DNA from: Auanema rhodensis
Lineage: Eukaryota; Animalia; Nematoda
NCBI GenBank assembly: GCA_964057225.1
Contig: OZ059895.1
Coordinates: 9,052,001 to 9,116,000 of the forward strand
Reading direction: 5' to 3'
DNA: 64,000 nt
The notes under the pieces are model-generated. The model worked only from the letters and a program-made list of their open reading frames with translations, made no database searches and was not told the origin of the DNA. The position numbers and the translations under genes were made by a program. Below, piece after piece: positions 41,270 to 62,100 of the stretch; the first letter of the stretch is position 1; each line of letters begins with the position of its first letter.

Positions 41270-44163
41270 TTAAAGCTGATGTACTTCAACAGATGGCTGC
41301 TTTTGGTAGACACGTGCGTTCACCACACTACATCTTTCAAATAACTAAAATATTTAAAAATTAAAAACTAAAAATCATAAATGTTTTTTACTGTTGTTTG
41401 AGTTGGTTGGAAGGTACGCGATGCAAATTGTGATGTCCACCTAAAACCAGATAAGCTTGAGATTATAAGTTCACGGAATTCAGGATTTAAGAAAGCATAC
41501 AACATAGGGTTAGATACGCAAGACATCATTGCCAATCTAAATAATAATGATTAATAACCTTGAAGTTTATAGAATTGAAAAACATACAAATGAGTAAAAA
41601 GATTTGTAAGATATGTATAATCTTCTTGATTAAACATAAGCATTCTTGTATTATCAGTAAATTCAATTAATGTACTGACAATATTATGTGGAAGAGAAGT
41701 TATTAGAAATATTAAAACCATTGAGACCAAAATTAGAGTTACACGTCGTTTTTGAGCCATAACACGCTTCTTTTGTTCCAATAAATGTGTTAACTGAAAA
41801 TTATACTTAAATATAATTATTTTTATTAAATATAAAAATAATCTTATATTATATTTTAAAGTTTTTTTTATTGTCAAATTAACTTTTTTGTTTTTTTTTT
41901 CATAAAAAAAAACTGTTAATTTAAATTTAAATGTTTTTATATATAGACCAAAGATATATTCTGCAAAAGTTTAAAAATAAATATCTTTCAACTTAAAATT
42001 GGATATATTTAACGCTTGACTAATGATCATCCATGTCGAACTTTGGCAGATCCTTTAGTTTGAACATTTAATGATCTTTGATTATTATATGATCGTTTTT
42101 ATTCAATTCCTTTACTTTTTGACAATATTCTGTCAATTCTTTACTTTTTATTATTATTATATGAATGACTTGCTTCAAAAGCTAACATACGCAAGTATTG
42201 AGAATAGTGACATCTAATGATACCTGCAAAACAAATTGCCGTTTAGGGGGTTCTCTCTTATTTTATAGTTACAACATCTAAAACTTTCAATAATTCATAT
42301 TCTTTCAAGATCTTTCATCATTCTGTTATTTTCCCATCATTTGGTGTCTAAGACATATCTTTTTCTGTCTTTTCATGTATAAACATGAACTAAATACATA
42401 TATATCTATGTATATAGTATAGTATAGTATAGTATATGCTATACTATATAATATAAAATAATAATTATAATTAATATTTTTTATTTAAATAAGAAAAAGA
42501 AAAATCTGCAAAACTATTTCAAATATTTAGTATGATGTTAATATTTTTCATTAACTCTAAATTATTTTTATTACAATTTATTTATTTATTTTTAATAATT
42601 ATATTGTTATATTCAATTATATTCACCTGTTCTTTATGTTGCTGAGTTTGCCTTCCAGCAGTCGCAGCTACAACTAATAGCAAATTAGCTTGCTGAGCAA
42701 TACTTGTAAGCCGAGATTTGGCTCGGCGACGCAAAAAGGCAAAAACCTTAAGGAAGGAATAAAGAAAATTATAAAATTTCCACAAAAAATAAGAATTACC
42801 GCATGGTAACAAATTGCCATAATAGTGAAAGGAATTAAAAATTGAACAATAAGTACGAATATAGTATAAGTTCTCTTAGATGCAACATTTGGCCATTCTT
42901 CCGTACAAAAAATTCCACAGATATCTGAAAAAATGAATAAATTAAGAGAAAAATCATATAGTTAACAGACTAAATTCATCGTATGTTCTCATTTTCACAT
43001 GAACCATATATGGTAAAGCAATAACGATTGATATAATCCATAGTAAAATGGTAATTCTGATAGCATTCTTTCGTCGTAAAGGACTTCCTAACAACAACAT
43101 TATGTATTCGAGTGACGTTTTGAGGTTATTTATCACCTGGAGCTATCACAAGTCTAAAGTAACGATCAACAGCTATTGCACAAAGTGAGAAAGTTCCAAT
43201 AAAGACGCCAACAGCTTGCACTCCAGCAAACGTTCTACACATGGGTGCTCCGAAAAACCTTTGAAGATTAATGATTGATTTGATGAAAAAAAAAGAGAAA
43301 ATAAACCATTCTTTAGCAATATTAGTAACTGGTGTTAGAGGTATAGATATGAATGCAAGAATAACTCCACTAACAGCCAAATTAACGATGAAGATATTTT
43401 GAACTGTTTGTAAACTTCGATACTTGATAGTAGCATAGATGACTCCTAAAAATAAAAAAAAATCCGCAATATTTCGTAGAAATCGGAAATTATTTTGAAT
43501 TGAAAAAGAAAAAAAGAAAGATGATGTATAGTTAGTTATACGGTAAATTGGTTTCTTGCTTTTTGTTCATTTGTTATACAGGAAATAAAGATCGTGATGT
43601 CGGATAATAACGATCAGTCATCTCCATCAAATGACAAAGTTCCGGATATTATCTCAGAACTCCGACAAATTTGGGTAATTTTTAAAAAAAAAGAAATTTT
43701 GATTGAAAAACTTATTTTTGTATATATTTGATGTTTCTTATAAAATCAAATATTTTATATATTCATAATAGAATAATATATATATAAAGATTTCAAAAGA
43801 TCATATAAATTAATAAAACATTAATTAACTTTATAAAATATAAAATAATTAAAGAAAATAGATATTTAACTAACCTGAATTTCCAAGAACACTTGCGATG
43901 AATACTAATGTATATAGTAATGTGAAAATAGAAATAGTAGCAGGATGATGGCTTAAATCAGGAAATACTTGTGTATAAGGCTTGCATTCTCTAGGTTTTT
44001 CAGTTGTTGCTGATGCTATTGATATTGGTGTTGTAGGAGACATTACTTCTTCTTCATCAACATTATTTGATCCCAATGCTAGAATAACATTAGAAGGTGC
44101 TAAGGAATACAGAAGAACTGCATTAGCTGCTCTAGTCATATCATAAGGTATGTTAGATGTCAT
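41270..44163 (-). CDS. NPY/RFamide-receptor-like class A GPCR (npr family)
   Basis: LGNSG, LQTVQNIFIVNLAVS, IPLTP, WFFG..MC, SLCAIAVDRY, FCTEEWP, QFLIP, LPHNI, AMMSCVSNPMLYAFLNPEFR; last exon tentative. Confidence 0.92.
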
Positions 44164-44183
44164 AGCAACTAAGAAGAAAAAAA

Positions 44184-44229
<46 letters not shown>
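44184..44229. repeat. (GA)n microsatellite
   Basis: Near-pure GA tract directly upstream of the GPCR acceptor and ATG. Confidence 0.95.
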
Positions 44230-44234
<5 letters not shown>

Positions 44235-44810
44235 AAAAACAGCAAAACGGACTAGATGATGAAGGCAATAAGCACACACTTCTTCTGAACTTCTGAAATA
44301 ACATAACAATGATTATATTATTAAGAATAATATACGGATTTTTCATTTTTCGAAGAATAAGTACGACATATAGTTAACTAGAATGTTTTCAGCTTTCAAC
44401 ATTATTTATAAACTTTGCACGATATTGATGACAGAATTGAAGAAAATGAGAAAAAAAGGTTGATAACTTCAAGATATATGTATAGTTTATAATATACAAA
44501 GTTTCATAAAATTTGTATTAGTTTTTGAATAATTAAAGTTATTTTTTGATTTTTGGAATATATTACCTTAATTATAAATTTATTTTAATCATTTATGTTT
44601 ATATATCTGGATACTTTTTTAAAAGATCTTAAGTTTAAAAATGAAAAATATAGTCACGTAATGTCAATTAGTAGCTTGTGATCAGCCATTTGTCAACCAA
44701 AAGAGAAGAGTGGGTGGACAAGTCAAACTGAATCGAAAATGGAAAGAGTACAACAAGACGAACGAATAAAAAAATTTTGAAGGGAGAAATCTATTTAAAT
44801 GTTCTGAAAT

Positions 44811-44812
<2 letters not shown>

Positions 44813-44876
<64 letters not shown>
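44813..44876. repeat. (GA)n microsatellite
   Basis: ~64-nt GA tract with one interruption. Confidence 0.95.
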
Positions 44877-44879
<3 letters not shown>

Positions 44880-46811
44880 GGGAGGGAGAGAGGAAGGGAG
44901 GAAGCAAACGAGAGAATGGTAGACATTAAGCGTCTGATCTAGACTTACCAAGATAGATCACAGGTGTAAGTTAAAGCATATAATATAATATTCAAAAATT
45001 AAGATGATATATGAAATATAATTAAGAAAATAAAATATTTAAACTATATTTATGGCTAAGTTTATAAGTAATTGAACATTTCTCAAGAGATACGTTAAAC
45101 TTCAAAAGAATATTAAAGTTTTGAATAAAAGTTACAAAGCATCAAGTTGGAAGTAAGTTTTGAAGACATAATGCTTAATTCTTCCAAAAAAAAGGAACTA
45201 AAGGTAGAAGTCCTGGTGAGATTCCGTTAAATTCTTAATTGAACTGTGTTCATATTATGAAAAATCACATAAATTGAATGAACTATGTTTGAGATTATAA
45301 AAAAAGAGAAAGAATATGATTAAAGAATTGAAAAAGAGATTAAAAAGAATTTGAATGTAAAATAAAATTAAAAAATATTAGTTAGAAGAAAAAAAAATTT
45401 TTAGAAATTGAGTTGAAGAAGTAAAATAATTGAATTGTTAACTATATGAATAAAATCTTCTTTTTCTTTTCTTTTCTTTTTTTAATCTTTGTATTATTTC
45501 TCTTTATTTTATTATTTTTTAAATTAAATTATTTTTTTTTTGGAACAATAAACAAAAGAATTTAAAAAGGAAAAAAGAATTTCATATGATTTGAATAGAT
45601 AATCAAATACTGACATACTTAAGAAGACAATGCTTTTATACTTTTAGAGAAGAAAAATCAAAAACTTAATGAACTAATTTGGAAAAAACTAATACATAAG
45701 AACATTTAACTATTTATATAATATAAAATAATTTTTAAAGAATATCTTTTTGAAAAATCATTGAGACTGCATGGGTGTTCGTAATTGGCAAAATGCGAAT
45801 TTGGTGAATTCTCTATCGTGTAAGTGCTTGGCAGTCATTTCCTTCTAAAGCTCTGCCACAGATTCTAAGAAGTGATGAAGAGGTTCTGTCATCAAAAATT
45901 GGAAATGAAAAGTCAATTGAATGTATTAGTTAGTTGAATCTTTTTTTAAAAACATTTCATTATATATAACTATATATATATAGTTAAAAAGAAATTAAAA
46001 CGAAAAGAATAGAACGTATATATGAAATGGATTATTGCTTTCCTTTATGAACAATTTGACTATAAATATGACATTTTTTAGTTTATTTTAAAACAAAAAA
46101 AAATGAGTTAATACATGAAATGATTGAAGAAGATTTTTATAAAAAAGATTTTTTTAGTTTTAAATTATAAAATTAATTTGAATATAAATATATTTTTTCA
46201 TTTTTTATATTAAAATATGATCAATTGGATGAAAAGAATAAGAAAAAATTACTAAATTGTTAGAAGAAAAGGAAGACGATGAAGCAGAAGAGAAAATAAA
46301 CCATTTTGACTAGTAAACAAGGTCATTTCTCTTTGAAAATTGAAATTTTCACAAAGCAGCGAACAGAGATTATGGAAATTAATTAGAAAATTGTAAAGAA
46401 ATGATCTTAGTTATACGTTGTGATTTAAACTTTTTTTTTGTTTTGTTTTGTATTTCATTGAAAGAAATGAGAATTTGATAGTAAAGAGAGGTAACTAAAA
46501 CTCTTTAAAGTGGATTGAGGCTCAGGTGGTTCGTTAACTACGATTGTTTCAACAAAACTATAAAACTTACTTTAAATACTTGAAGTATCTATAGAAAAAC
46601 TTCTGAATTTAAAAGAAATGGATAAAGATTATAGAATATATGTAAATTATGATTGGCGATAAGCCTAAATTGGAGAAGCAATAGAAGTTTTTCTGGAGGT
46701 AAAAGTCCGCCCCTTGACATATCCTTGCAAATGTTGATGGCTGCTAACTTTGTGAAGAGAAGTAGTTCATAATGTAGAAAATATATGACTAAAAGAGAGA
46801 GAGGGGGAGAT

Positions 46812-46813
<2 letters not shown>

Positions 46814-46846
<33 letters not shown>

Positions 46847-46900
46847 ATGGATGTCAAGTAATCAAACTAAAATATGTATTATATATATATATATATATAT
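46814..46900. repeat. (GA)n and (TA)n microsatellites
   Basis: GA tract at 46814-46843 and TA tract at ~46880-46900. Confidence 0.9.
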
Positions 46901-50662: not shown

Positions 50663-51058
50663 GCTTTGATGTTACCGCGATCAGGTTAACTACTTGCTTT
50701 ATCAACCAAATTTAAAAGTCATAAAACAATTAAAAATAATAATTAAAATAAAACTTGAAATGCTTCTCCTCTTACTGGACTTTAAGGCGTAAGTTGGATA
50801 AAATCATTTTGGTTCAAAAAGTATTTGAAAATACCTATTGTTTTAGTCAAATTAAACACTTTTTGCTTTGTATATCGGTAGTATTTGCTGGCAATGGTGG
50901 TGATGATTGTATCACTTTGATATTGATAATGTGCCTTCTTATCATTTCTAATAATTGATTCTCATTTTTCAGGCACAAGGATCATTTCATTTGCTTGTGT
51001 ATGACAGTGAAAAGAGAGAAAAGAAGAAGTAGATAGAGAAGGTAATAGAAAGAGAGAG

Positions 51059-51122
<64 letters not shown>

Positions 51123-53108
51123 AAAAAAGAGAGATTGAGAGAGAGAGAGATTGAGAGAGAGAGGGGAGATAGAAAATCGAATATGGGTTTTGAAATCAAA
51201 ATAAAAGGAAATTATGAAAACTTAAGGTTTTGTGAAAACTTTACAATGCTTTCAAACGTTTGATGATTGTGACATGTCGACTTAAAGCTCACCAATACAC
51301 GCACCAGACCTAAACGATGCATGTATCTCAGTAGGCAGCTGCTGAAAGTGGAGAAGAGAAACACTCCTCTCCTCATATCTATCCCTCTTTCTTCTCAAAA
51401 AGAATGTGGTTAAACAAAAGAAGAAGAAGAAGAAGAAGAAGAATTGATGTGAAGATGCATGGGTTTAGCTGTAAAATTTGTCATAATTCTTCCTTTTGCT
51501 CCTGAAGCTTTATAAGAATAAATTGACGTAATAGAATAAATTAATTGAAAAGAAAGATTTTTGTGATTAACGTTTGGAAATTAAGGAAAATTGGAAAACA
51601 AGAATGAAATTAACATGAAAAGCCTATCAAAGACTTAGAACGATTAGTCTAACTTCAAAAGGAAGGGGAAGTTTCAATTGATAAATGAACAGACTATAGT
51701 TACCAAAATAAGAAAGATAAATATAGAAAAAAATAGAAAAAAAACCAGACAATGATAAAGTGTGTTAGTTTTAGTAGTTGCAGCAAAAAAAGTGAAACGC
51801 GGCTTATTTCAGTATTGCCTCATCCGTTATGATCAAGATCAGAAAGCTTTGATGTTAGAGATAGAGGGAGCGGGAGGACGCACGTCTTGACCATCTATGG
51901 TAATGGATGAGATGTTCACTCTCTCTTATTTCAGTTATGTCTTTCTCTTTTTCCCTCAGATGTCTCACGAAGAGAAGATGAAGCTTCATAGTCATTTTGC
52001 TGCTTGTGACCATTGCTGTCTTTATGGGATGGACAGCACTAACGAATGGCAATCCAATACGGAAATAGATATGAACAAATTGGAATCTCATCGTAATAGA
52101 AAGAGAAGTAGACACAAAAAAATAATTTTTTTTAAAAGAAATAAGGAAAACTCTTTGAAATATAAAATAAAACTAATTGATTTAATGTAAAAACGCAGAA
52201 AGATAAACGAAACCGCTTCAACCGACTTATCAAGTTTGAGGATTAAACTATGCTGATTCAAAGAAATTGCGTGCACTGTCTATATCATTGCATAACTTCT
52301 TCACAACTATATCATCATTGAGCATATCAGACCCAGTTTGAGAGAAACACAACACGGTTTTACAGAAAATAGGACACAATGACTACGCAAGGACGAAATC
52401 GCTGCGGGACCACAGAAAAGTAAGGAAGAATGAAAACAATATGCGGGAATGATCATTTGGACGAAAAGCCCTAGAGATCATTTCATGACATGCACAGCGA
52501 AGACGCGTACACGACATCAGATAGAAGACAAAGAATTTAAAAGAGAAAAAGAGAAAAAAAAGTGAATAAGACAAGAATTTTTTAAATTTCGCACTAGTTA
52601 TATATACAAAAATATAAAGAAATATGTGAATTATTAAAAAAACTAATTAAAATATTATTTATTCAACAACATAATTTATAAAATAATAACTGAATATTAT
52701 TTATTTTTAAATAAAAAAAAAGAATATTTGATGAATCAATTAGCATAACAATTTAAGTTTTATAAACAGCTGCTATTCTTTCTTTTCTTTTCTACTTAAA
52801 TCGATACGATCAAAGAATTAGAAGAAGAAATGAAAACGATTATTGACAATTTTTGAAAGTTCAAAAAAGGTTTTTTAGATTATAATCTTTTAAATTTTTT
52901 TTCAAATCTTTTTTTTTTTTAATTTAATAGAAGAAAAAATTAATTTAATATAAAAGAATTTATCATTTTAGGTAAAATTCTTTATATTCTTCTCGATTTA
53001 AACGAACACTGTCACTTCTTCCATCTTGGGTTTTTAATTTCTGTGAACTCTTTGAAGTAGCCGGCGGGTCGTTTAGTGTTAACCAACAGTTAACTTCAAA
53101 GATGCCGC
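50663..53108. promoter_or_regulatory. cluster of TCF/POP-1-type sites upstream of Axin
   Basis: CTTTGA(A/T) on either strand at 50664, 50915, 51626, 51847, 52153, 52257, 52809, 53050 and 53095; some flanked by GC-rich helper-like sites. Confidence 0.65.
51011..51170. repeat. (GA)n microsatellite within a purine-rich tract
   Basis: Pure GA run at 51065-51119 inside a degenerate GA-rich tract. Confidence 0.95.
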
Positions 53109-53813
53109 AGAGATATGGCTGTCCTCGTAGTCATGGTCATCTATTCCATCAATGTTTGAAATTTGTCAAGTTTAAAAGAAAAAAAAAGAAGGAAAAACTG
53201 GCAATCATAACTGCTTAAGAGAAGAAAAAGTATTCAATCAAACTAACTATAAGAACTTATACAACTTGTTTATATATTTATTTATTTTATTATTTATACT
53301 TTAATTAATTGATTATTAATTTTTATTTTTAAATTATAAAACTTGGTACATAACGGATTATGATACGCTATTCCATTGGCCTATAGTATCGTTTTAGTGA
53401 ATGTTCATTTACCTTTTTCTTTACTCATCAGTAATTAGAGACAAGCTAATGGATGGCTCCAGTACGAAAAGAGACAAGGGGCATATGACGCAACCAATCC
53501 TCTCAGGTCTCTTGGCTCTCTTCTGACCGACCACATTCGACCGAACGCAACAGGTTTGAACTGGTTGCGCTGTTGTCTTTACTCTCTTAAGTACATGAGA
53601 TAGTATATCTAAATAAGAGAGACAAGGATGTTAAAGAAATGCTCAATTCAAAAGTTGACCTGGTCTGACCGCTGATGACCTCACAACATCAGGGTTGGTC
53701 AGTTTTTTCACCAAAAGAATCTACCATTCCTCCATCATATCTATATCTCTGAATCTCTTTATCCTAAACTTTTGACAAGTCGTTTCAAAATTGTTTTTCT
53801 TCAGATTTCGACA

Positions 53814-54323
53814 ATGACATCAGCATTTGAAACATTGATGGCCGGCCAATCGTTCAGTGAAGCGTTTCAAAACATCAAGAATGAACTGTAAGCTTGAATT
53901 TTTTCTGATCTCATCTGCGATATTCATGTTTTCATAATGTCTTTTAAGATCAAGCTTAAGAGCAACATCAGTAACATCAAATAGTTCAGAAGAAGATAAA
54001 GTTGTCAGTGAAAAGAAGGTTTTCTTTAACTATAATTTATATTAAATTTTATATTAATTTAGTTAGATTATATGGAAAAAAGAAGAAGAAATAATGATTC
54101 AGCTAGAAGATCTCGTGAAGTTCGACGTGTTCGAGAACAAAAAACCCGAGAGAAAATGGAGGTAATATTCATATAAATTTATATTTTTTTATAATTTTAA
54201 TTATATTTTAAGGAATTAGAAAAAGAAAATTTATTATTACAAAGTCAAATAGCACTCTTACGAATGGAATATAATCAATTGGTTTTATTATTAGTTGCTC
54301 AACAAACTTCTAAAACAACTTAA
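53814..54323 (+). CDS. small bZIP transcription factor (PAR/NFIL3/CEBP-like basic region), copy A
   Basis: TTCTTCAG acceptor then ATG; 4 exons: MTSAFETLMAGQSFSEAFQNIKNEL SSLRATSVTSNSSEEDKVVSEKK LDYMEKRRRNNDSARRSREVRRVREQKTREKME ELEKENLLLQSQIALLRMEYNQLVLLLVAQQTSKTT*; AATAAA at 54378. Confidence 0.9.
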
Positions 54324-54517
54324 TTCATCTTTTATTTATTTATTTATTGATCTCTTTATTTATTGTATTTTTAATTTAATAAAATGTTTTATCCTTTTTT
54401 ATTTTTATTATTATTTCTAAATATATTTATTTTTTTTTTGAAATTAATATGAAAATCAGAAACATCTGTTGCCAGAACACCTAGTATGAAAAGGTTATAT
54501 CTAAAAATAATTATATA

Positions 54518-54548
54518 TAAACAAACAAACAAACAAACAAACAAACAA
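54518..54548. repeat. (AAAC)n microsatellite in the palindrome spacer
   Basis: About 7-8 tandem AAAC units. Confidence 0.9.
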
Positions 54549-54788
54549 ATATGAATATTATTCTTATTTCAATTATTTTTAATAAAAATTCAAAAACTAA
54601 AAACTTTATTTGATTGAAGTTTAAGTTTAAAATTATTAAAAATTCTGTTATCAATACGTATTTTTTAATTTTTTTAAGTTTTTAAAGAAAAAATTAAATA
54701 ATAATAAAAATAAAAAAGGATAAAACATTTTATTAAATTAAAAATACAATAAATAAAGAGATCAATAAATAAATAAATAAAAGATGAA

Positions 54789-55298
54789 TTAAGTTGTTTT
54801 AGAAGTTTGTTGAGCAACTAATAATAAAACCAATTGATTATATTCCATTCGTAAGAGTGCTATTTGACTTTGTAATAATAAATTTTCTTTTTCTAATTCC
54901 TTAAAATATAATTAAAATTATAAAAAAATATAAATTTATATGAATATTACCTCCATTTTCTCTCGGGTTTTTTGTTCTCGAACACGTCGAACTTCACGAG
55001 ATCTTCTAGCTGAATCATTATTTCTTCTTCTTTTTTCCATATAATCTAACTAAATTAATATAAAATTTAATATAAATTATAGTTAAAGAAAACCTTCTTT
55101 TCACTGACAACTTTATCTTCTTCTGAACTATTTGATGTTACTGATGTTGCTCTTAAGCTTGATCTTAAAAGACATTATGAAAACATGAATATCGCAGATG
55201 AGATCAGAAAAAATTCAAGCTTACAGTTCATTCTTGATGTTTTGAAACGCTTCACTGAACGATTGGCCGGCCATCAATGTTTCAAATGCTGATGTCAT
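54789..55298 (-). CDS. small bZIP transcription factor, copy B (mirror of copy A)
   Basis: Mirror image of 53814-54323; ATG at 55298, TAA ending at 54789. Confidence 0.88.
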
Positions 55299-55849
55299 TG
55301 TCGAAATCTGAAGAAAAACAATTTTGAAACGACTTGTCAAAAGTTTAGGATAAAGAGATTCAGAGATATAGATATGATGGAGGAATGGTAGATTCTTTTG
55401 GTGAAAAAACTGACCAACCCTGATGTTGTGAGGTCATCAGCGGTCAGACCAGGTCAACTTTTGAATTGAGCATTTCTTTAACATCCTTGTCTCTCTTATT
55501 TAGATATACTATCTCATGTACTTAAGAGAGTAAAGACAACAGCGCAACCAGTTCAAACCTGTTGCGTTCGGTCGAATGTGGTCGGTCAGAAGAGAGCCAA
55601 GAGACCTGAGAGGATTGGTTGCGTCATATGCCCCTTGTCTCTTTTCGTACTGGAGCCATCCATTAGCTTGTCTCTAATTACTGATGAGTAAAGAAAAAGG
55701 TAAATGAACATTCACTAAAACGATACTATAGGCCAATGGAATAGCGTGGAATAGTTGACCTAAAATTTCATATTTTTGATAATATGGCTCAATATTGTTT
55801 CTATTCCGTTGATTGATGTTTGTATCTCTTATAAAGACTTGCTGACAGA

Positions 55850-55921
55850 TCCTCGGTAGTATAGTGGTGAGTATCCGCGTCTGTCACATGCGAGACCCGG
55901 GTTCAATTCCCGGCCGGGGAG
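55850..55921 (+). tRNA. tRNA-Asp(GUC)
   Basis: 72 nt; acceptor stem TCCTCGG/CCGGGGA, D arm AGTATAGTGGTGAGTAT, anticodon loop CTGTCAC, T loop GGTTCAATTCC; T4 terminator 4 nt downstream. Confidence 0.97.
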
Positions 55922-56128: not shown

Positions 56129-59100
56129 TTAACCAAAGAAATCATCCTAAAAATAAAATATTTTTAAAAAAGAAAATAAATTTGTAAACAAACATCATCA
56201 TCATCATCATATTCTTTATTTGTTGGTTGATATATGGATGATATACGTGGCAAACGTTGATGTTGTGTTGTATCCTATAAACAAGTTAATTATATAATTA
56301 TAATTAATATAATTAATAAACTTCATGTTCAAATACATTATTTGAAGATGGACTAAAATAACTTTTACTATTATATTCTTTTTCTAATTGATCAAGAATA
56401 TATTTAGAAGTTATAATAGGTGGTGGAAGACGTGATGATTGTCTAAAATAACATTAACTATATGTATATAGTTAATAATTAAAAATTACCTTTCTAATTC
56501 ATTATTTGTATCAGAAGTATTTGGTTTAAACTCATCATTCTAAAAAAAAATTAATTATTATAATTATAATAAATATTTACAATTGAATTGTTAAATGTTC
56601 TTCTTCTTATATTTGGATGATTCTGATTCCGTACAGCTGTTCGATAAATATTTCTTTCTTGTTCTTCTTGTTTTCGAAATGATTTACAACATAATATTCT
56701 TGAAAATAGTTTATAACTATATGATATAGTATATTTTCTTTAACATACCTATCTCTATAAAAATAGAAAACGATACCCAATCCAATAAGTATAATAGCTA
56801 TACCAACTCCAATGATTACACCAGTTAAAACAGAAATTCCTTTCTTAGCTGGTTTTATCTTAATTATTTTTATATTTTATTATTATTATTAATATTAATA
56901 TTATTACCACTGGTGCACATGAGAATATTCCAGCATATCCTTTAACTGCTTGACAATTCTGATTTGTATCACATGAAGATAATAACTATAATATTTATAT
57001 ATTTAATTATATTAATATAGTTAAAACTTACTTGAGGTGAACATGAACTAGACATTCGACATGTTGGAGCTGTATCAACTGATGGACATGGTACACAAAA
57101 TGTTTTATTATATTCCATCTTAATTATAAAAATTAAATTATAAATATTATATAATTAACTTGATATGTTCCCTGTCCACATAGTATACAGATAGCAGCAA
57201 AAATAGTATTTGGTGGAACAGGAACAACTACAGTTGGAGATACTTGTGTATTTGGTGGACACCAAGGAATATCACAATCAGCAAGATATTTACTTCCACG
57301 AGAATATGTAAGTAATCCAATAGGACAGTTATAACATGGAGCTAATGTTGTATTCTTAATATATACATATAGTATAATATTATAATTATAATTATATTTA
57401 CTTTAAATGTTCCAATTGGACATGGTTGACAGTTAATTCCATTCAAATCAAACTCATATCCAGCTGAGCATGTTAATGAACAATCTAATACATTAGTTGC
57501 TCCCTTTAAATAAATAAAAATATTATTTATATGTAATATACTATATTTAATATAATTATAAGATATGTATATTATCAAAATTCAAAAATAACATCCAGAT
57601 TAAGTTAAATCGCACTGAAATGCTCCAGACATGATAAAGGACACCTAGTTCAAAATCATAAAATTTAAAAAAAAAGTTTTTTTAAAGTTTTTAAACATAT
57701 ACATATATGTATGTATATATATATAATATATAATATATAATAAAACTTACAGTAATTGGTGTACTTGTATAGATTGGACAACCAAAACATTCACTTCTAC
57801 CTTCATATGGTTGAAATGTTCCTGCTGGGCAATGAATACATCCTACAGTTTTATTAGCATAATAGCTTCCTATTTGACATTTATCTTTAAAAAATAATAA
57901 ATAAATTATAAAATTATATGATAAAACTAGAATATATACCGTAACATTGAGAATATTGTGTTGCACGTGTTAATATGCCTGTAGTTAATCCTTCAGGACA
58001 ATTATCACATTTATAAAGATTAGAAGAAGATAAATTTCTAAATTATGTTAATTATATAATAAAAGTTTTTAATTTTCTTTTAAACCTATATGTATCAATA
58101 GGACAATCAGTACATTCTTGTGTTTCTTGTTTAAGATATGTTCCTGCTGGACAATTAGCTATAAATATATAAATATTATAATTAAAATACTAATTATCAT
58201 AGATTACCACATGAAAAGTTGTCTCCAATAATAGATGTTACTGGATGTGAAGCTGAGCAATTAAACAATGAACTTATGCTTGTAGATCCATTAGGAAATT
58301 GAAGTTTAACACTTTGATCAACTGGTGCTGATAACATTTTTCTTGTATTACTATAATATAAAAATTAATATAAATTAATAATAATAATAATAATACTTTA
58401 AAAGTATTTCATAAGTGAAATATTGAGGTGAAATATCCCGTTTACTTCTATTTCCCGTCATATTACATAATGGTTCTATTATAATTTGATTTGTGCAATT
58501 ATCAATACAATATTCTGATATATCATTATATAAAGTCATATATAATTCATTAAATATCTAAAAATTATTATAATTAATAGAAATAAATAAAAAAAAAATA
58601 AAAATACTTGTTCACAATTCCCATGAGCATCAAGAGATCCATTTATAACCTGTAATGGTGAAGCTGTATTACCACATGTTGGAAATGTATATTGAACATT
58701 AGGATTCATCCAATTATCACGATCCCATTGACCCTATTAGAATTAATTTATTATAATATATTTATAATTTAATTATATATTATACCATATCATCACATGT
58801 AAAAAAATTAGGATTTTTTGTTTTATAATACTCGTCATCACAATTGATAAATGCAGCTAAATGACTATTTGTTCCATTTATACTTCGTTTATATACTTTT
58901 CCTTGTATCTATATAAATATAATAATAATAATATTAATTATTTTAATATAGTTGAGTATAATTACCTGAGAATCATCTGTATTTCTACAATCCATTGGAG
59001 TAATTGTTAAATCAAATTCACATGTAGCTGTATTACCAGCTTCATCTGATGCTACATAAACTATATGATATATTCCCCTATAATATATATTTTTATTTGA

Positions 59101-62100
59101 TTTTTTCAATTTATTATTTCAATTACCAATTAAATGATTGACCAGATCGATAATTACTAATGACTGAAGATACACCTACATTATCATAAAACATATTTAC
59201 AGTAGACCAATTAACTGTTGTTAAACGATTTTTACTTATTATTCTCATAGAATCTGGACAATTTACAACAACTGGAGGTATTTTATCTGTAAATTATTAT
59301 TTTTTTTAAATAAATAAACAAATAAATATGTAAATACCTGTATCATTACATGATGGTCGTCCAGGAAGACAGTTTGATGTAAGACATATACCTGGTACAA
59401 TTGTTTTAATTGCAGGATTATCTCTTTGAACAGTTGTGAAGTTTGGCCAATTAATAATTAAATCAAGATGTCCTTAAATATGAAATTTAGATTATATCAT
59501 ATAAGTTAAAATATAGAGAGAAAGTAAGAGAGAGAGAGAGAGAGAGACCTGTATTCCATTTGGTACATTCAAATGCCATTTCAGCAATTTCAGCATCAGT
59601 TAAACGTGATGAATATAACTATATACATATAATTAAAATAATAAAAATACATGATAAAACCTGTATTAAACTGATAATTCCTTCAAATGATCCATAAGGA
59701 TCAAGTTTTATTAAATATTGATATAATTTACTTTCAGGTAAAATATTATTAGCAGCTTCTTTTACAAGACTACCATCAACAAAATAACTCCAAATATATC
59801 TAAATTATAATTTATAATTGTAATTATAATAGTTAGTAATATACTTATCATCACTATTATAATCTGGACTTCTTAAACATATCTAAATTATTTTATTTAT
59901 ATTAATTATATATTATTATTTATAATTACCTGATGCCATACAAGTGTTGAAATTGATTGAGATATGAAACGTTCTTGATCTAATAAAACTCCTTGATTAT
60001 CAATTTGTATAACTAATTGTGATCTTAATTATATAAATTATAGATATATATATTATATATAAAATATATTTACGGTGAAGTATTGGCTACAATAGCAACA
60101 AAGGCTGGAAAGAAATCTGTTGATTTACTAAACTTTGATGGAGCATATTGAACCCAACCACATAATGTAAATTCTCTTAAATATTTTATAATAATTTATA
60201 TTTAATATAACTTATACCTATATAATGATGTATTTAACATACGTGATACAATTTGTTGTGTTGATTTATAATTATTAAAAACTAAATTAAATGATGTTGA
60301 TAAATCTAAAATATATAATTATATAATTATATAAATATATTTAATTAACCTGTTTGACAATATTCTCCAGTAAAACTACTTAAACATACACAATATGAAG
60401 TATTATGTTCAGTAATACAATGTCCTCCGTTTTGACATATTATATCATCACATGATGACTAAATATTATATTATTATTATTAATAATAATATAATTAGTA
60501 TAGTTAGCATAGTTAATTTAAATTATAAAAATAAATAAATGAAACACACTTGTGTTATATCACAATGATCACCAATAAAGCCATGTGAACATATACATTT
60601 AGGAATTGTATTAGTAATAGCACAAACACCATGCAAACATGTCCAACTGTCACAAGGATTCTATTAAAAAACAGATAATTTTTATGTTAATTATATTAAT
60701 TATTATTAAAGATCTTACATAGTTAGTCTCACAATGAACTCCTGTATAGTTAGCAAAACATAGACAAGATGGTGTTAATGTATTTGGAGAATATGTACAA
60801 TTTCCATGATAACATTTCCATGAAACACAAGGATTCTTAATATTAATTTCTATATTATTTCTAATTATTATATTAATTATTATTATATAAATAATATATA
60901 AATATACTAACATCTTCTCTTTCACAATATTTTCCACTATATCCATCAAAGCATTTACATTGTTGCTTATCATCATCATTATCATAAACACATGTTCCAT
61001 TATTACAATTCAAATTACATATATTCTATAATTTATATAATTTGTATAATATATATTAATAAAAATTTTACTTGTTCACAATGAAGTCCCGTATTATTTG
61101 GATTACAAAGACATTTTGCATCATTTTTCGAATCAATGATACATGTTCCACCATTTTCACATTTTATATTTGAACATTCATTCAATTCGCAATTATGTCC
61201 ATGAAATTCTAAAATGAATTGAAATTTTAAGAATTATTTCCAACGATAATACCCGGTTTACATGTACAAGTATATCCATTTTCATTAAGTTCATTACATG
61301 TTCCACCATTTAAACATGGATTAAACTGGCAATATGATATAAGTTGAGTACAATTACCATTTGAATCAGTATAATAATTTGAATTGCATAAACAAATATA
61401 ACTTTCTCCAACAATATCAATGCATTTTCCATTATTACATGTATTTACATTACATATTGTTGGTGGAATTTCACAAAAAGTACCTATAATTATGATAATT
61501 AATAATAAAAATTATATTTTATACCTGAATAGTTATCAGTACAGTGACAATCCCAATTAGTAGAATATAAACTACATGTTCCTTTATAACATGGACTAAA
61601 ATCAGGTGAACATATAGTTTCAATTGATATCTATAATTCATATAATTGATAAACTTAAGAAAATTCGGATTTTATCGGTTTTATGCCACTTGCCCTTTGA
61701 AGTTCAATCTAAAGACGGATCCATAAGGCATAAAGCCGATAAGATCCGTGAATTCAAATATACTAACTTCACAATTCTCTCCACTATAACCTTCATCACA
61801 TTTACAGAATTTTCCATTTGCATATGGCATACATTGACCATGTCCAGAGCATTTTTCCCCATCACAATATGATTTATAAGAAAGACATGAACATGTATCT
61901 CCTGACCATGCTTTAGGACAATCACAATGATATGTCATAGATCCATTTAAATAAGAAGCTTAATTATATTTTTTTTAATATATATATATAGTTAGAATAA
62001 TAATATACTTACATACAACACATTTACCATTAGAACATAATGAATTTTTTGAATATGAACTTGATAAACATGCAGTTGAAACACTACATGTTTGCCCAAT

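Follow-up and report, generated by a model that had tools for sequence, protein, structure and literature searches.

Two bZIP genes that appear identical and face each other in the genome of the nematode Auanema rhodensis raise the question of how such a mirror image was formed, of whether the likeness of its arms reflects youth or continued homogenization and of whether the arrangement affects the activity of the genes. The locus was analyzed within a stretch of 64,000 nucleotides (contig OZ059895.1, positions 9,052,001 to 9,116,000), referred to here as the window. A repeat search of the window detected an inverted repeat with arms at 53365-54416 and 54696-55747, each of 1052 nt, 100% complementary and 279 nt apart, and a scripted arm comparison demonstrated that the reverse complement of the right arm is exactly the left arm, with 0 differences. 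The first-pass annotation had reported identical 1052-bp arms across a 279-bp spacer, with introns that match even where they are AT rich, and the exact comparison agreed on both counts. The whole palindrome occupies ~2.4 kb, with the gene copies tail to tail and hence convergent, and is made up of the following parts.

53365..54416, + strand: left arm, 1052 nt, comprising upstream DNA (449 nt), the gene with its 3′ UTR and 33 nt past the AATAAA
54417..54695, no strand: spacer, unique, 279 nt, 15.8% GC, containing a microsatellite of (AAAC)n and, on each strand, additional AATAAA hexamers
54696..55747, - strand: right arm, exact reverse complement of the left arm

A search of the whole genome (181 Mb; 180,911,798 bases) found two copies of the arm, both at the palindrome, and one of the spacer. 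The palindrome is located deep within a 24-Mb contig and has unique flanks. The spacer contains an (AAAC)8 run at ~54521-54552 and AATAAA hexamers at 54581 on the + strand and at 54605 and 54426 on the - strand, and no mirror homology was detected between its two halves. No second large inverted repeat was present within the 64-kb window, nor was one present in the contiguous 264 kb formed by the window and C3:9116001-9316000, a span too small for statistical power. Repeats of other kinds were observed in the added DNA. A 1043-nt direct repeat, 99.8% identical and with its copies 2.4 kb apart, lies at C3:9241524-9245984 (L015:5524-6566 and L015:8942-9984); a 108-aa open reading frame overlaps the end of the first copy, and the repeat may represent either two LTRs or a recent tandem duplication. 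At C3:9191015-9193129 (L010:5015-7129), a 2.1-kb tandem array repeats every ~100 nt, with copies that are ~85-92% alike.

The arms had been described as each holding a complete unit, and this description was borne out: each contains 449 nt of upstream DNA, an acceptor site, four exons and an AATAAA hexamer, and ends 33 nt after the latter. The acceptor, TTTCTTCAG, is located 9 nt 5′ of the ATG at 53814. The coding sequence of 354 nt specifies 117 codons and a TAA stop and is divided among exons of 74, 70, 99 and 111 nt, with introns of 61, 44 and 51 nt, all three of which have GT..AG borders. Exons were searched singly, and a protein of Auanema sp. JU1783 (P0001) was utilized as a proxy for the full-length product. 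Coordinates of the right copy were mirrored from the left as 109112 minus x, and a match for the right exon 3 at C3:9106951-9107049 on the - strand confirmed the mirrored positions.

53814..53887, + strand: left gene exon 1, 74 nt, with the ATG at 53814; its last 2 nt belong to a codon completed in exon 2; matches P0001 residues 1-16
53949..54018, + strand: left gene exon 2, 70 nt, Ser rich with an acidic stretch; matches P0001 residues 29-50
54063..54161, + strand: left gene exon 3, 99 nt, encoding the basic region of the bZIP (signature N-x7-R); 30 of its 33 residues agree with P0001 residues 51-83
54213..54323, + strand: left gene exon 4, 111 nt including the TAA, leucine zipper; 32/36 identical to P0001 residues 84-119
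54378..54383, + strand: left gene AATAAA polyadenylation hexamer, with the arm end 33 nt later
54789..55298, - strand: right gene copy, with exon 4 at 54789-54899, exon 3 at 54951-55049, exon 2 at 55094-55163 and exon 1 at 55225-55298
54729-54734, - strand: right gene AATAAA, a hexamer found by script

When exon 3 was compared with 1.84 billion representative proteins, three matches were obtained, the best being P0001 itself, a protein of 125 aa (CAI4225341.1). All four exons are colinear with this protein, with exon borders at residues 50/51 and 83/84 and identity at 90 of 107 aligned residues. The gene model, including its start codon, is thus independently supported, because it is colinear with an annotated protein. 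A word search with P0001 detected bZIP proteins of 109-190 aa and one 69-aa partial protein in Ancylostoma, Haemonchus, Oesophagostomum, Trichostrongylus, Nippostrongylus, Angiostrongylus, Teladorsagia, Parelaphostrongylus and Cooperia, with further relatives in Pristionchus and Dictyocaulus; about ten strongylid genera are thus represented. As the Auanema sp. JU1783 protein matches all the exons and strongylids have relatives, the gene is, on the strength of these alignments, real and conserved among rhabditine (clade V) nematodes. Paralogues of the basic region elsewhere in the genome are only distant, being at most 55% identical. In one of the relatives, Dictyocaulus viviparus KJH49922.1 (P0002), the basic-region segment occurs twice in tandem at residues ~98-163 in nearly identical form, which is either an exon duplication or a local duplication in the assembly or annotation.

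The product had been annotated as a bZIP protein, an assignment reinforced by profile searches. Exon 3 alone scored 24.2 bits against Pfam PF07716 (bZIP_2), above the cut-off of 22.3 (E = 3.6e-5), while P0001 scored 41 bits (E = 2e-10) and covered profile positions 4-54 of 54. The Asn and Arg of the signature are exon-3 residues 10 and 18, Thr occupies the first heptad position (residue 28), and Leu is present at exon-4 residues 2, 9, 16 and 23, in steps of +7 and in register with N-x7-R. The best relative among solved structures was NFIL3 (8k86, E = 2.3e-4 with exon 3; 8k89, E = 2.9e-9 with P0001), followed by C/EBP beta (0.66 and 2.5e-4, respectively). No Pfam family was matched by exons 1 and 2 (47 residues), and the protein is too short to accommodate a PAR region or an NFIL3 repression domain. 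The predicted protein is a small NFIL3/PAR-type bZIP transcription factor of 117 aa. It has in common with NFIL3/E4BP4 and the PAR-family factors an extended basic region, N-x7-R and a four-heptad zipper but differs from them in its length of only 117 aa, in having no recognizable domain beyond the bZIP and, apparently, in lacking a proline- and acidic-rich region.

Base composition is uneven across the palindrome. The upstream part of the arm (53365-53813) has a GC content of 39%, compared with 25-27% in the flanks and 16% in the spacer, while the 3′ UTR is 9.7% GC. This GC-richer part is presumably a promoter or an outron. A non-coding RNA within these 449 nt was considered and rejected: the arms contained no Rfam match at E ≤ 1, and the upstream part folded no better than shuffled sequences on either strand (z = -1.0 and -0.3). 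Candidate binding sites for bZIP factors were also sought in this DNA.

53486..53493, + strand: candidate bZIP site TGACGCAA, a hybrid of CRE and C-EBP half-sites located 328 nt 5′ of the ATG; mirror copy at 55619-55626

TGACGCAA has three matches in the 64 kb, one of which is this site, within the 449 nt that precede the gene in the left arm, and TTAYGTAA, the type of site expected for NFIL3/PAR-type factors, was absent from the arm upstream DNA. Auto- or cross-regulation by a bZIP factor at the candidate site is possible and may serve as a lead only; a claim of autoregulatory sites was dropped, as there was no TTAYGTAA and the single TGACGCAA was too weak.

The arm ends were inspected for traces of the originating event. 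Decayed homology beyond the arms was looked for as a sign of age and none was found, with no residual similarity on the outer or the spacer side of the arms (all z < 2). There was no target-site duplication, the flanks GATTATGAT and GGAATAGTT having no common direct repeat, and no microhomology was visible at the arm junctions. The heptamer GGAATAG occurs at 55738-55754 both 3 nt inside the outer end of the right arm and as the first 7 bases outside it, and its complement occurs at 55801, 46 nt further on, and at 53141; these amount to 4 independent copies in ~1.6 kb, compared with 13 in the whole 64 kb. GGAATAG was considered as a junction microhomology and set aside, as it did not fit a simple switch model. 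One RNA gene lies close to the right arm.

55850..55921, + strand: tRNA-Asp (GTC), intact, 102 nt outside the right arm and not duplicated

Genes for tRNAs are known pause sites for replication forks, and the flanking tRNA-Asp might have favored a template switch. The number of tRNA loci counted in the A. rhodense genome is 19,554 (10.64898/2026.08.27.747507). The neighbor to the right, at 57000-59400 on the - strand, has multiple exons and combines cysteine-rich repeats of the ephrin-receptor-like type with a HYR domain, and to the left, at 41550-44350 on the - strand, is a rhodopsin-family GPCR. Another multi-exon gene to the left of the palindrome (47.8-50.4 kb, - strand) had no Pfam match, and an axin-like reading of it by eye was dropped when Pfam gave nothing. 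Long intergenic (GA)n and (GAGAGG)n microsatellites are also present to the left of the palindrome, at 44143-44950, 46775-46868 and 51000-51170.

The first-pass annotation had posed a recent inverted duplication and gene conversion as the alternative origins of the palindrome; this was the right pair, and it fits all the tests run. In our judgment, the palindrome probably arose very recently, when one complete small gene unit was duplicated in inverted, tail-to-tail orientation. A very recent one-off duplication was favored because the arm ends are sharp, there is no target-site duplication and there are zero differences even in the introns. A single replication or repair accident of the fold-back or template-switch type may have produced it, with ~1 kb of the opposite strand being copied into the chromosome again, 279 nt 3′ of the gene. 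A unique spacer would then be the usual mark of such a mechanism, and the identity of the arms, including the AT-rich introns and the 3′ UTR, would be a plain reflection of youth. Human inverted duplications formed by fold-back reportedly have a short unique spacer between their arms. As P0001 differs by roughly 16% of amino acids and the arms by zero, the arms are much more recent than the separation of the two species. At a mutation rate like that of Caenorhabditis, ~2e-9 per site per generation, which is not an Auanema measurement, zero differences in 1052 nt place the event, or the last homogenization, at under about 7e5 generations ago (95% bound). The main rival is an older palindrome whose arms have been kept identical by recurrent arm-to-arm, that is, intrachromosomal, gene conversion. 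The arms of sex-chromosome palindromes are known for such exchange, and in Caenorhabditis conversion runs through short introns and acts between inverted neighbors. The authors who described the hsp-16 inverted repeat of C. elegans attributed its identity to conversion (PMC3966223). Against this stand two weak arguments: each of the four arm ends is identical down to its final base, with no decayed homology beyond (long-converted repeats usually show frayed edges), and the 3′ UTR (9.7% GC) and introns are without the GC enrichment expected from biased conversion. The one-off duplication was ranked above long-term conversion because of the identity to the last base at the four ends and the lack of any sign of biased conversion, and we regard an older palindrome kept identical by conversion as unlikely, while giving it real weight.

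Two further readings were weighed. In one, the true locus is single copy and the palindrome is the consensus of chimeric or fold-back reads, an artefact that would likewise give exactly identical arms. The locus, however, lies deep in a 24-Mb contig with unique flanks and a genomic-looking unique spacer of 279 nt, and artefacts from missed adapters are without such a spacer and are sized at read scale. The assembler was also not making such structures routinely, as no comparable repeat was present in 264 kb. The presumed source assembly was made from HiFi reads of unamplified DNA at ~236x: the A. rhodense APS4 assembly of 180.9 Mb was produced with hifiasm from HiFi reads of unamplified bulk DNA of an inbred line (bioRxiv 10.64898/2026.08.27.747507), with a read depth of ~236x in gene-rich regions (10.64898/2026.08.27.747507). 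Because such reads, of which hundreds are expected, would cross a 2.4-kb structure with unique flanks and spacer, an assembly artefact is very improbable. In the other reading, a transposable element of the fold-back type captured the gene. Foldback elements are resembled by the locus in their long terminal inverted repeats and short loop, but no transposase is present, both copies of the arm in the genome are at the one locus, and the arms consist of a conserved host gene with orthologues across nematode genera. A mobile element was excluded because there was neither a target-site duplication nor any further copy, and this origin is scarcely credible.

Inverted duplicates of several kinds have been described, and the Auanema pair resembles each of them in part. 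In C. elegans, the hsp-16 locus (hsp16-1/hsp16-48) is a 3.8-kb perfect inverted repeat with 1.9-kb arms that are 416 bp apart (Russnak & Candido 1985, summarized in PMC3966223). The likeness lies in small nematode genes within a perfect inverted repeat, a short unique spacer and 100% identity including non-coding DNA (1.05-kb arms and 279 bp in Auanema). The difference is that the hsp-16 arm carries a head-to-head pair of stress genes, whereas the Auanema arm carries one transcription-factor gene, the copies of which are convergent. Newborn duplicates in C. elegans frequently lie next to each other in inverted orientation, and their median span is 1.4 kb (Katju & Lynch 2003, summarized in PMC2728529). 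The Auanema pair, with zero divergence, adjacent and inverted copies and a span near this 1.4-kb median, is like that class, and it displays the opposite orientation, near-zero divergence and ~1-2-kb span of young adjacent inverted duplicates. About half of the young C. elegans duplicates are partial or chimeric, whereas the Auanema duplicate is complete from its upstream DNA to its poly(A) signal. Fold-back or template-switch inverted duplications (human; yeast, PMC7467729) have inverted arms and a short single-copy spacer, as in Auanema; the human and yeast cases, however, are large, are usually terminal and are joined to a deletion or a new telomere, while the Auanema repeat measures 1 kb and is interstitial. 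As the repeat is interstitial, a second switch back would have been needed.

The immediate effect of the duplication is two identical transcription units and hence, potentially, a doubled dosage. As the arms each include the whole coding unit together with 449 nt of DNA upstream of it, the plain expectation is of two active copies and a higher dose. The convergent arrangement could also generate double-stranded RNA. It had been noted that a short read-through would give a fold-back RNA, and the distances and predicted folding were in accord with this: transcripts reading ~300 nt past the cleavage site would reach the other arm and those reading ~390 nt its stop codon, and an exon 4-spacer-other arm transcript was predicted to fold into a perfect 204-bp stem (-313 kcal/mol, z = -46). 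Given the identity of the arms, a read-through RNA would be antisense to both mRNAs. A selected self-damping module, in which such hairpin or antisense RNA enters a Dicer/RDE-1 or ADAR pathway and buffers dosage, was already put forward in the first-pass annotation; it is physically possible and could be combined with either origin, and in C. elegans Dicer-dependent siRNAs and ADAR-edited double-stranded RNA are made from hairpin and inverted-repeat loci. Each Auanema gene, however, has its own AATAAA, with back-up hexamers in the spacer on both strands, the structure is so young that there has been little time for selection, and in the sister species the annotation treats the gene as a normal protein-coding one. 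We therefore consider a selected module of this kind to be very doubtful. The C. elegans hpRNA, 23H-RNA and ADAR editing-enriched loci (10.1101/2024.02.15.580610; PMC5859968; PMC4408787) resemble the palindrome in that a long perfect double-stranded RNA is possible if the DNA is transcribed through. Small RNAs or editing have been observed at those loci and define them, with the hairpin within one transcript (an intron, a UTR or a non-coding RNA), whereas the Auanema pair consists of two separate terminated genes that would need read-through. On the favored reading of a recent duplication, hairpin or antisense transcripts arising by read-through would be incidental and not a function under selection. 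The stronger proposal, that negative feedback is built into the convergent identical pair through dosage-dependent double-stranded RNA (Dicer/RDE-1 or ADAR) and that the palindrome has been retained and homogenized in Auanema for this reason, is more doubtful still.

The young mirror-image gene pair is real and belongs to an ordinary class long described in nematodes, and it reveals no new mechanism. It offers a clear case of a gene born by small inverted duplication, in which a whole transcription-factor unit was copied with no later change, in an inbred line for which the assembly is of high quality. Its value is that of a well-defined, natural test case for how such duplications form, for how rapidly their arms diverge or are converted and for whether convergent identical genes give rise to double-stranded RNA.
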